Below are positions 24,301 through 60,600 of a DNA stretch of 64,000 bases, piece after piece. Both the position numbers and the translations under genes were made by a program. Within the stretch, counting starts at the first letter, position 1. The number at the start of each line of letters is the position of its first letter. Location of the stretch: positions 51,956,001 to 52,020,000 of the forward strand of contig OX638149.1 of the NCBI GenBank assembly GCA_951804945.1, given 5' to 3'. Below the pieces are notes generated by a model. That model was not told the origin of the DNA, ran no database searches, and was given only the letters and a program-made list of their open reading frames with translations. This DNA comes from Podarcis cretensis (lineage: Eukaryota).

Positions 24301-26047
24301 CTCTTCAAGCCCTTGATCAGGTAGGAAAGTGCAAAGGTACTTTGCTCTGTGGTGGAACTCGCTTTGGTATGAGGAAGAGTGGCTTCCTTAGGAGCCAAGT
24401 GGGGTTTTATCATCAGAATCCTGAGACTTTTTTGTTAAGTAGGTTGCTGGTAACTTGTGTATATGTAAACACTTACTGTGATGACAGCATCTGATAACAC
24501 CTTTCATTTAATTTTACATTTTTATCCATGTCCTTCCTCCATGAAGCTTGAGGGTAGCATGCATTGTTACCCACAGTTTTATCCTCGTAATAACTCTATG
24601 AGATAGTGTTAGGGAACTGCCATCGGAAAGGCAGGAGGTGGAGGGTCTCTCAGAAGTCAGGAGAGACTCAGCAGCGGAGGAAGGCACCAGCAGGGGGAGA
24701 GTGGCCTACAACAACGCGGAGAATGTGTCCACAGGGATAAGTCCCTTCCTGGCCAATTATGGGTGTCATCCCAGGGCATTTCCAGGAGAAGGAGGGGAGA
24801 GATGGAGTGTCCCGGCTGCGGAACACTTTGTTGAAGAGATGGAAGCGATCCACCGGCAACTCCAACTTAACTTAGAGAGGGCCAAGGAAGAATACAAGAA
24901 GCAAGCAGACAGAAGCAGAAGGGAAGGTGAAACCATAAGGGTGGGGGACAGGGTGTGACTATCCACCCAAGGACTGCCGTTCAAGGGAGGGTGTAAGAAA
25001 TTGAGACCCAAACGGCTGGGACCCTTTGAGGTCATACAACAGGTCAACCCGGTAGCATTCAAACTCAGATTGCCCAACCACATGAAACTGCACCCAGTAT
25101 TTCACAGGTCTCTACTGTCACCATACCGAGAGGGGCGAGAGTGGGGGGAACGTGAGAGGGGGGTTACTCAAACACCGGTCATAGAAGAAAGGGAACGCAA
25201 CATGCATGTGGCAGAAATCATTGATTCCAGGTGGAAAGGGAATCAGGTGGAGTATTTGGTAGAATGGGAAGGGGAAGCGGAGTCGGAAAACACATGGGTG
25301 CCGGCAGAAGAGGTCAACGACGAGGTTTTAATAGAAACGTTTCATCAACGGTTTCCAAGGAAACCTCAGCCCATGGGACGGTTCAGGAGGGAACACTTCG
25401 GCACCACCGATGAGGAAGAGGAGTTTGAAGGGTTCCCAGAATCAAGGCTGGAAGAGGGAATAGACTCCGACGAGGAAGAGGACACAGGGAGAAGAGACGG
25501 GAGGCAGTGGAGAGAAGTGTTTGAGTCCTCTGATGATGAGGAGTGTTCTTTCCGGGGTTTTCCATCCTCACCGCCAGCAGGGGAAGGGGCGGGAGGGGGT
25601 GAAGGGGGCCCTGGAGGGGAGGTGGATGTCAGGGAACTGCCATCGGAAAGGCAGGAGGTGGAGGGTCTCTCAGAAGTCAGGAGAGACTCAGCAGCGGAGG
25701 AAGGCACCAGCAGGGGGAGAGTGGGAGATCAGAGAGAGAGAGAAACGAAGGAATGGCTCAGGGAGTCTTCCAGCGATAACAGCGGAGAAGTCTCAGGTCC
25801 TCCCATAGGTACACCCACTCTTCGCCGGAAACTGTCGCGCCGAGAATCCAGACGACGCGTTTCTGTCAAGGAGCTTTTATGCTGGAGTAGATTCCGTAAA
25901 CGCCCACTGTCGGATTCTGCCAGCGATTGAGGGAGCCACGCTTAAGGGCTCCGCTAAAGACAGAGTCCTGCTAAGCTGAGCAAACTCTGAGGGACTAAGC
26001 TTTTACGCACAAGCAGCTCATCATCCCATCACAGATAGATTAGATTG

Positions 26048-26081
<34 letters not shown>

Positions 26082-57789: not shown

Positions 57790-60495
57790 CTAGAAAGGAG
57801 AGTTTGTGGGAATCCACTGTAAGTTACTGATTTTCTGAATTAAAAAACAACAGCTACATGTAATAATAATCATAAATTATTTAACAACATTAGAAGAAAA
57901 CTGAGTATATAATATTTTGGGCCAGTAAGAATATGTTGCAGTATGGAGTGCTTCTGTATAGTGCTCCAGTCAGCCAAGCTTTCCTTCCTTACACTCCTGG
58001 CATCACCCACCTCAGTCAATGTACTCAGCCTTCAATGGGCTGTTTTGACTCCCCTGTCTCAACCTAAAGATTTTTAGTACTTTTGCAAGCTGGGATACCC
58101 AGAAGCCTGCTGATATCTTTCTCTTGTGCATGCATGGTAATGTTTTGATTACATAAACACTGGCACTTGGATAATTGAATTTGCTCTTAGTACAGATTCT
58201 ATGATAGAAAGCATATGTCTATAAACTTGACAAGCTGGATCTCATTTTGTTCTGGAATGAAAATTAATACTGTTACATCATGAACATATATTTCTAAATT
58301 TGGAGAAAATACTAAATATGATGTCCTAAAGGCCTATGGTTCACTTATCCCCATTTATTCTATTTCCTAAAATAGTGAGACAGCTTACAAGAATTCCCCA
58401 TTTTGTACCTCCTGAGGGCTGCTTCCAGTGTGTCTAGTATAATATGTGTACCTACAACACTGCCCACTATGTGCAAGAACCATGTAATTCTGTTTGATAC
58501 ATGTGCTCTCTACAGATGTCATCAAACGCCACAGCTGGCTCTGGGGACCCTCAGTGAATGCAGCATACATGAAAATCAACTAGAGCAGACATAAAATTCT
58601 AACACTTTACAAGGAATCCTATCGGCAGATATAGTACACAGAGGCATATGCCTTAACTCCTGTAAATATGAAGCAGCCCTATTTTAGGTTTTGTGGTAGA
58701 TTTTCTTCTTGATAGGAACCAAACTATGATTATCAACTTTTTTATTCTTGTTATTACAACAAACTGGAAGGTAGCAAACACTGCTTAGTCCCTAAGTTAA
58801 TATAAATTCTAGGGGAAAAGAAATGAAGAAATGTAATTTTAAGGCAAATAAAAGCATGTTTCTAAAATGCCTTTTCTCTGTTATTGAAATACAAAAAAGC
58901 CAGTGATTCTAACTAAACTATTTTTTGTTTATGCGAATGGCCTAGTTTTTCCATTATGCAATAGGTATTTTAAAGACCCAGAGCCACATTCCAATACAGA
59001 GTTAGGCACACCAAGACTGAAATACTAAACATATTAACTAGAGAGAAAGTCCCACTCCTCGTAGCAGAATTGCACTGTTTTGGTTAAGATTTCAGTGAAC
59101 TTAAGCATACTTGAATTTGTGTTGAATTGTGGCCCAAGAGTTAGAAAAGTCTCACATTATTACAGTCACATTGTTGCCTGAAAGATTTAGAAATATCTCT
59201 AGATCAAAAGTCCATGAGGTCAGATCACATGATGAAGACAAAGTATGCAGCATAAAGACTGGCAGCTTGATCCTCAAAGGAACACATGATGTAGAACTGG
59301 TTAGTGAAAATCGGTCCTGTGTGGCTGGAATCATTTGAAGACTGTTGCTTTAAAGCAGCTTAATCAGTTATCAGCAGCAGATCTGAAACAACCTCAGTCA
59401 ACAAAACTCCCTTTTGACAAGGTCATGAAATAAGTTACAGATATATTCAAGCTCCGACATCACACATGCTAAGAAATTTAGTGGTGTAGCTGGGTTTAAA
59501 CCCAAGGTCATGCACGTGCCACGTCATACGTTGATTACAGCACATCCTCAAGGAGGTTTTATTTTCAGTACTCCTTAGGTTCTGAAAGGTTTGTCTAGAA
59601 GTAAACAGTCCTCACAGCCCTATTTTCCCTACTACCCACAACTCTATACAATCAGACTGTGATCCGCTGCTCTCCCCACCCCTACCTACTCTGTGGGAGC
59701 AGACCCATCACCCTACTCCAGCAGATGCCTAGTCGAAACCCATCAAATTATGTGCATCTGAGGTGCAGGGGGGAATTACCTGTGGGGAGAAGGCTGAGGT
59801 GACGGCTCGGGGTCTCATTCCGGGGACGAGCCCGGAGGCTCTCTTAGTCCCTCCTCATGGTCAGACCCAGTGGGCCTCTCCGAAATCCTCGCGGCTGGTT
59901 GCGACTCCAAGGGCTGGAAGGTGCCGCCCTCGCCGCCTCCTGTGGCTTCTTTCCTCGGAGAGGAGACGTGGCAGTGAACGTCCTTTGCTGGGGTCACCTC
60001 AGGAACCCCAACGGGGGCTCGCAGCACCAAGACCCCTCCGGCCCCGCAGACTTGAGGGCCGCCCGCCTCTCGTCTCCCTTCTTCCTGGAGCACCTTTCGC
60101 GCTCGGCTCCGCTGCCCAATTCCCGCGCGGGACAAGGCTTTTTCCTTAGCCCCGTCTGGGAATATGGCGGGGGGGGGGGTGGTTCGTAGATTCGTAGCCC
60201 AAGCCTGCCGGGAAAACAGCGCCTGCTGGGGAGAAGGGCTGTTGGGACCTTGAGTCCCGAGGCGGGTGACCAATATCCGGCCTCCACTCGCCGCTGCCCA
60301 GTGCTTGGTCCAGCCCAGGGAAGGGGTTGGGAATGCCCGAGGTTGGCTGGCCCGCGTACGAGTGGAGTCTCCGCTTGCGCCGCCCCTTCGAGGAAGGCTC
60401 TGAGGAACCGGCGCCGGCCTTCGAGGAGAAGTCGCTCAGGCCCTACGAGCCGACCTGCCCGTCGTCGCAGGTGACACATCCAGGGTGTCCCTCAC

Positions 60496-60600
60496 GGCCG
60501 TAGACTCCCCCTGCAGCCGCCGCCGCCGCCGCCATTGCTGCTGTTTGTTTTCATCCGCTCAGGGCAAGCGGGGAGCGCTGACTCCGCATCCGCCGCGGCA
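60496..60600 (-). other. ATG13: ATG13 probable non-coding first exon (5' end approximate)
   Basis: Donor GCC|gtgagg at 60496 with a (GGC)6 repeat, inside the CpG island. Confidence 0.6.

Follow-up and report, generated by a model that had tools for sequence, protein, structure and literature searches.

Tandem FxGF motifs in the integrase tail of a lacertid chromovirus: candidate mimics of LEDGF/HRP2 client peptides

Introduction

Can the integrase of a retrotransposon find transcribed chromatin by imitating the cellular proteins that dock on LEDGF/p75? The question is raised by a 64,000-nucleotide stretch of the genome of the lizard Podarcis cretensis (assembly GCA_951804945.1, contig OX638149.1, positions 51,956,001 to 52,020,000 of the forward strand; hereafter the window), which holds a short copy of a chromovirus, a Gypsy-type long terminal repeat (LTR) retrotransposon with a chromodomain behind its integrase. 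The tail that follows this chromodomain includes two peptides ending in Phe-x-Gly-Phe (FxGF), which the original prediction likened to the TFIIS-N-domain-interacting motif (TIM), also named IBD-binding motif (IBM) after the integrase-binding domain (IBD) of LEDGF. Comparison of related protein sequences indicates that the motifs are a conserved family trait of one clade of lacertid chromoviruses. They are candidate mimics of the peptides by which host proteins bind LEDGF/p75 and HRP2, the readers of methylated histone H3 lysine 36 (H3K36me).

The motif pair of the window

A single open frame of 309 codons on the plus strand (25001-25930) encodes the tail (features are listed in Table 1, in window coordinates). 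Its translation shares one frame with the Pfam matches SH3_Tf2-1 and Chromo and places both peptides in the pol frame at the positions first assigned to them, directly after the chromodomain, with motif 1 starting about 10 residues past it. Their location in the integrase tail was also part of the original prediction. AlphaFold2 indicates that this tail is disordered, with a predicted local distance difference test score (pLDDT) of ~40-55 beside a chromodomain above 90; a disordered location is expected of this motif class.

The six-frame translation of the 64-kb window contains 19 FxGF strings, and only those of motifs 1 and 2 have at least four acidic residues among the eight preceding positions. 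Two FxGF arise by chance with p = 0.004 in 200,000 shuffles of the 91-residue tail, and diverged relatives have these motifs at the corresponding place. The two window motifs have 13 identical residues in common, eight of them specified by different codons; these include the Phe that ends the helix-prone segment and the Phe, Gly and Phe of FxGF. Since identical residues of paralogous motifs are kept through different codons, this points to selection acting on the protein sequence of the motifs, not on the RNA or DNA.

Table 1. Features of the chromovirus copy, in window coordinates
Feature	Position	Strand	Remarks
Target site duplication GATAG, left copy	24602..24606	+	same 5 bases at 26034-26038
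5' LTR remnant	24607..24704	+	first 98 nt, starts TGT; 97 of 98 bases identical to 25627-25724; joined directly to mid-integrase
Integrase fragment downstream of catalytic core	24705..24958	+	aligns with integrase of P0001 and P0002; same frame as 25001-25930
Integrase C-terminal SH3-like domain	25004..25129	+	Pfam PF24626 SH3_Tf2-1, E = 1.3e-13, aa 2-43
Chromodomain without aromatic cage residues 1 and 3	25205..25351	+	Pfam PF00385, E = 2.3e-11, aa 69-117
Motif 1	25382..25435	+	FRREHF, 8-residue acidic Thr-Thr linker, FEGF; 18 residues, pol frame
Variable acidic spacer, motif 1 to motif 2	25436..25507	+	low identity among relatives, length varies
Motif 2	25508..25561	+	WREVF, 9-residue acidic Ser-Ser linker, FRGF; 18 residues, pol frame
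Purine-rich tract ending in polypurine tract	25580..25626	+	polypurine tract GGAGGGGAGGTGGA at 25613-25626; abuts LTR start
3' LTR	25627..26033	+	407 bp, TGT...ACA; start from repeat with 24607-24704, end from CA terminus followed by target site duplication
Extension of pol frame into LTR	25627..25930	+	~100 codons; basic cluster, then acidic Ser-rich end
Target site duplication GATAG, right copy	26034..26038	+	5-bp duplication

Conservation among lacertid relatives

A HMMER search of 1.84 billion representative proteins with 208 residues of the window protein, from the SH3-like domain to the polypurine tract (PPT), gives 7,538 matches, five of them below 1e-30. Further relatives were supplied by word-index protein searches; those made with the tail of P0152 and with the window chromodomain plus tail return three and two proteins, respectively, one of which is new (P0187). 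All proteins closer than ~45% identity that extend past the chromodomain carry this type of motif at the same place. The close carriers are P0001 (from Logan), P0002 (from ENA), P0004, P0044, P0151, P0152, P0153, P0154 and P0187, and wherever the source of a carrier is named, it is one of two lacertid lizards, Podarcis muralis or P. lilfordi. In total, 17 motif instances are found in 13 related proteins.

The motif is rigid in its layout. The linker between the aromatic segment and FxGF has exactly eight residues in motif 1 or nine in motif 2 in all 17 instances. The aromatic segment ends in Phe in every instance, most have Trp or Phe four residues earlier, and FxGF is usually followed by Pro, Ser or Thr. 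Fifteen instances have an acidic linker, with 4-7 acidic and 1-5 Ser/Thr residues each, and 14 of the 17 contain, by sequence, an S/T-x-x-D/E site of the type phosphorylated by CK2. Motif 1 is kept in P0001, P0152, P0153, P0004, P0044 and P0154, and motif 2 in P0001, P0151, P0152, P0153 and P0002. Individual decayed copies depart from this in one respect each: P0151 reads FEEF, P0187 reads LEGF, and P0002 has lost its first motif. Conservation of both FxGF motifs and the upstream Phe among family members, the first check proposed with the original prediction, holds at the protein level.

A divergent lineage of Podarcis muralis nested in the family (P0020, P0185, P0186) keeps the aromatic segment, the eight-residue spacing and FxGF. 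Its linker, which accounts for the two remaining instances, is all Ser/Thr without any acidic residue and resembles the phosphorylation-dependent type of DPF3a.

The alignment of the tails shows the motifs as islands of conservation. Mean pairwise identity is 0.62 in the chromodomain, 0.49 in motif 1, 0.23 in the spacer between the motifs, 0.51 in motif 2 and 0.18 from motif 2 to the PPT, and the length of the spacer varies freely. A TIM-like pattern, in which a hydrophobic pair is separated from FxGF by an acidic Ser/Thr linker of 7-16 residues, matches nine of the 11 family members, with no match in 82,572 residues of chromovirus proteins outside the family, drawn from fish, fungi, other squamates and other sources. 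An FxGF tail is found in none of the ~160 other chromovirus proteins examined. A scan of JGI metagenomes with the family alignment yields three loci, all of them unrelated chromodomain genes without FxGF tails. An ESM Atlas look-up of the tail has 0.80 as its best score, which is at noise level.

Two database entries combine Gypsy segments with host-type sequence. P0167, a Podarcis muralis protein annotated as a vomeronasal type-2 receptor, is a gene model that fuses integrase or chromodomain pieces to host-type domains, and P0003 fuses Gypsy pieces to a trypsin-like protease part. Both models are probably annotation chimeras.

Correspondence with the FxGF class of TIMs

TIMs begin with an obligate short helix that has Phe, Val, Leu or Ile as anchors; an acidic linker of 8-16 residues follows, with many Asp/Glu and Gly and with Ser/Thr that can be phosphorylated, and FxGF may complete the motif (PMC9987994). 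FxGF is present in all known partners of LEDGF and HRP2 and is essential there, phosphorylation by CK2 raises the affinity of TIMs, and several proteins have more than one TIM (PMC9987994). In KMT2A, Phe129 and Phe133, four positions apart on the helix, fill one pocket and Phe148 and Phe151 of FxGF fill a second one; the consensus for the LEDGF IBD is D/ExExFxGF (PMC8022399). The HRP2 IBD directly binds a 20-residue peptide of DPF3a in which four acidic residues come after LFGSTSESDTSTFHGF, and phosphorylation of the peptide improves the binding (PMC7337902). This mode of interaction of FxGF with the LEDGF domain is conserved from flies to humans, as in Drosophila JIL-1/JASPer (PMC6877644).

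The window peptides, with their helix-prone aromatic segment, acidic linker and FxGF, match the published TIM/IBM layout in all its sequence-level features, as first supposed. Motif 1 (EEEEFEGF) fits D/ExExFxGF exactly. Motif 2 (EECSFRGF) fits it except for a Cys two positions before the first Phe, a site at which its relatives carry Ser or Glu. In the window frame, AlphaFold2 places a helix at aa 125-133, ending at the Phe before the linker; in P0001 it places helices at aa 278-284 and 328-330. All of these have low pLDDT.

Loss of the chromodomain cage

Group I chromodomains read methyl-lysine through an aromatic Tyr-Trp-Tyr cage, of which the window copy keeps only the central Trp, with Met at position 1 and Glu at position 3. 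Aromatic residues are absent from positions 1 and 3 in all 11 family members, which have His, Asn, Ser, Thr, Gly or Met at the former and Glu, Ala or Leu at the latter. The other chromovirus matches retain Tyr, Phe or Trp at position 1 in 143 of 150 cases and Tyr or Phe at position 3 in 162 of 170 (~95% retention). In the P0020 lineage the central cage Trp is lost too. AlphaFold2 folds the window chromodomain with pLDDT 93-97 despite the loss of the cage. The absence of cage residues 1 and 3 is the pattern known as group II, reported from plants alone in a survey of 2013 (PMC3605345).

The phylogeny of the region from the SH3-like domain through the chromodomain (169 proteins, IQ-TREE quick search) unites the window copy with P0001, P0151, P0152, P0153, P0002 and the P0020 lineage in one clade with a support of 100 in the Shimodaira-Hasegawa-like approximate likelihood ratio test (SH-aLRT). 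P0154, which has one motif, joins this core clade together with P0067, with support 91. P0067, from the amphisbaenian Rhineura floridana, is the nearest outgroup devoid of the motif; it has no FxGF tail and an intact chromodomain cage. The lineages that carry the motif are ~1 substitution per site apart in the neighbouring domains.

The gain of the motifs coincides with the loss of the cage, and this loss strengthens the idea that the element has been retargeted. The coincidence in the compared proteins is suggestive, not a statistical association, because the tree holds only one or two such events.

Proposed role and alternatives

The stretch between chromodomain and PPT is the disordered C-terminal integrase tail of a clade of lacertid-lizard chromoviruses, with one or two copies of the motif. 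In the model that we favour, this tail would imitate the cellular FxGF clients that bind the TND (TFIIS N-terminal domain) of the H3K36me readers LEDGF/p75 and HRP2, their IBD. The reader would hold the integrase on transcribed chromatin and integration would take place there; phosphorylation of the linker by CK2 would raise the affinity and the presence of two motifs would add avidity. Targeting would have passed from direct reading of a histone mark to an adaptor, which fits the loss of two of the three cage aromatics. We put at even odds this model of client mimicry, in which the tail anchors integrase on transcribed, H3K36-methylated chromatin under the control of CK2 and with avidity from its two sites. 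The analysis shows the motif, with its conservation, fixed spacing and confinement to one clade, and the loss of the cage; from these we infer the partner, a phosphorylation of the linker and an influence on where the element integrates. The evolutionary version of this proposal, that in a lacertid clade the chromodomain ceased to read methyl-lysine and tandem linear motifs imitating LEDGF/HRP2 clients evolved instead, is put forward tentatively and may well prove wrong.

Several observations weigh against these proposals. Every relative is a predicted protein and only a few lacertid genomes supply them, which limits the evidence of conservation to ~10 subfamilies of one clade; the link between motif gain and cage loss amounts to essentially a single evolutionary event. 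In motif 1 of the window, Arg replaces the usual Trp four residues before the helix-end Phe, as it does in P0187. The linkers of eight or nine residues are at the short end of the published range, and the helices predicted at the aromatic segments are of low confidence. HMMER searches of PDB sequences, one using the 74-residue tail and one a profile built from motifs 1 and 2 as its two rows, give no match at E up to 10, a result that is uninformative because such short motifs are below the reach of HMMER. Finally, short motifs of acidic and aromatic residues bind promiscuously, and the partner could be a different one.

This last point leads to the strongest alternative, unlikely in our judgement yet serious, that the motifs are real and conserved protein-binding sites for a partner other than LEDGF or HRP2. 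Acidic-aromatic peptides are general binders, and the conservation evidence is identical for both readings. The partner might be IWS1, TFIIS, Elongin A, MED26 or PPP1R10, histones in an acidic-aromatic contact of chaperone type, or a coactivator that binds peptides resembling acidic activation domains; TIMs do bind several TNDs with differing selectivity (PMC9987994). The invariant part of the lizard motif is, however, F-x-G-F at a fixed distance from the end of the aromatic helix. A generic acidic patch needs neither the Gly nor a spacing fixed at eight or nine residues, and FxGF, essential in LEDGF and HRP2 partners, is optional for the other TNDs (PMC9987994).

An intramolecular role is a good deal less probable. 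In this reading the tail would turn back on its own protein, its acidic motifs engaging the basic cluster encoded by the LTR, the DNA-binding SH3-like domain or the cage-less chromodomain, and would regulate integrase activity or multimerisation instead of targeting. It is common for an acidic tail to mask a basic surface that binds DNA, and a conserved, LTR-encoded basic cluster does end the same polyprotein. The AlphaFold2 models argue otherwise, since they show no packing of the low-pLDDT tail on the folded domains, and charge masking requires neither FxGF nor a fixed spacing.

We give very little credence to a CK2-dependent phospho-motif of the XRCC1/XRCC4 type that brings in PNKP, aprataxin or APLF through their FHA domains for the repair of integration gaps: F-G-T-T-D-E-E of motif 1 is close to the core heptapeptide YxxSTDE (PMC4655838), but phospho-Thr is needed where several motif 2 instances, including that of the window, have Ser or Asp, the aromatic residue is three positions before that residue and not four, and the invariant FxGF is left unexplained. 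Equally hard to sustain is the absence of any protein function, the motifs being either chance products of an acidic tail or by-products of RNA or DNA constraint just upstream of the PPT: the region does lie 65-245 nt upstream of the PPT and acidic low-complexity tails are common, but the shuffling result, the use of different codons in the paralogous motifs and the retention of the motif over that ~1 substitution per site, while the spacers were scrambled, speak against it.

Comparison with known systems

Other integrases are tethered through their tails. In the gammaretroviral integrase C-tail bound by the ET domain of BET proteins, and in the pairs Ty5 integrase-Sir4, Ty1 integrase-AC40 and Ty3 integrase-TFIIIB, integration sites are set by a short stretch of the integrase, at its C-terminus or close to it, that binds a chromatin or transcription factor of the host. 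The lizard tail differs in motif class and presumed partner, and none of these tethers is known to use an FxGF/TND contact.

The close counterparts include the cellular FxGF carriers KMT2A/MLL1, JPO2/CDCA7L, POGZ, IWS1, CDC7-ASK, MED1 and DPF3a, and JIL-1 of Drosophila. They too have the motif in a disordered region, anchor it by an aromatic helix, which in the lizard tail is a low-confidence prediction, and set F-x-G-F behind an acidic Ser/Thr linker that contains CK2 sites; tandem copies as in the lizard tail are found in JPO2 and ASK. Unlike these, the lizard carrier is a retrotransposon integrase and not a host transcription factor, its docking is a prediction, and its linker is fixed at eight or nine residues, near the lower limit for the class.

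Lentiviral integrase would share with the lizard tail the use by a retroelement of the same host reader, and of the same domain, to reach transcribed chromatin. It binds the IBD through a folded interface of the catalytic-core dimer, reported to be lentivirus-specific (PMC9987994), whereas the proposed lizard contact is a linear motif that copies cellular clients. Among chromoviruses, group I (MAGGY, Tf1 and fish Sushi-ichi) and plant group II share with the lizard clade a chromodomain placed after the integrase SH3-like domain. Plant group II chromodomains also miss cage residues 1 and 3; the lizard clade differs from them by its vertebrate host and its FxGF tail.

The host element

The element that carries the motifs occupies 24607-26033 (1.4 kb) and retains an intact target site duplication (TSD). 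It has LTRs, a PPT, a TSD and a chromodomain that follows the integrase C-terminal domain, which identifies a chromovirus, as first proposed, with named relatives in squamates. The window copy is a dead element: gag, protease, reverse transcriptase, RNase H and the integrase core, ~4 kb in all, are deleted. The sole in-frame stop, at 24956-24958, closes the integrase fragment. The near identity of the LTR pieces (one mismatch in 98 bases) and the single stop suggest that the insertion is fairly recent. No further copies or solo LTRs of the element are found within the 64-kb window, and its 407-bp LTR, scanned with simple patterns, shows neither a TATA box nor an AATAAA or ATTAAA signal.

The pol frame continues past the PPT into the U3 part of the 3' LTR. 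P0001 shares both this LTR-encoded extension and its C-terminal end, the ends of P0002 and P0154 are related to it, and the basic cluster of this end contains a conserved Trp. From these sequences, the LTR-encoded end looks like a real C-terminal module, which raises the question of a role in nuclear import or in contact with nucleosomes or DNA.

Outside the element, a (GA)n microsatellite at 26051-26079 lies a few bases downstream of the right TSD. G+C-rich stretches at 1-2000 (0.59) and ~59800-60500 (~0.55), against ~0.40 elsewhere, resemble CpG islands.

Significance

We found no description of FxGF/TIM-type tethering of a retrotransposon integrase in the literature searched, which leaves subscription journals mostly outside its coverage. 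The publications found on chromovirus integrase targeting concern only chromodomain-based targeting and plants, and FxGF and retrotransposons occur together only in the study of fly JIL-1/JASPer, where the two terms are unconnected (PMC6877644). The one paper that mentions both TND-interacting motifs and transposons or transposition is likewise unrelated.

Integration-site choice decides how much harm a retroelement does to its host, and retroviral vectors face it as a central problem. Few tethers are known, and that through LEDGF has been regarded as lentivirus-specific. If the proposed role is correct, no LTR retrotransposon before the lizard chromovirus would have been known to use the docking mode of cellular IBMs to reach gene bodies that are transcribed and H3K36-methylated, a solution convergent with that of lentiviruses but structurally different. 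The LEDGF/HRP2 hub would then have been targeted more than once, through a different interface, and the motif would provide a natural minimal LEDGF/HRP2-binding tag of ~18 residues. Synthetic peptides, and statistics of insertion sites in lacertid genomes already published, allow a direct test of the hypothesis. For this family of elements, the proposed role would link a visible change of the chromodomain, the loss of its cage, to a changed strategy of targeting.

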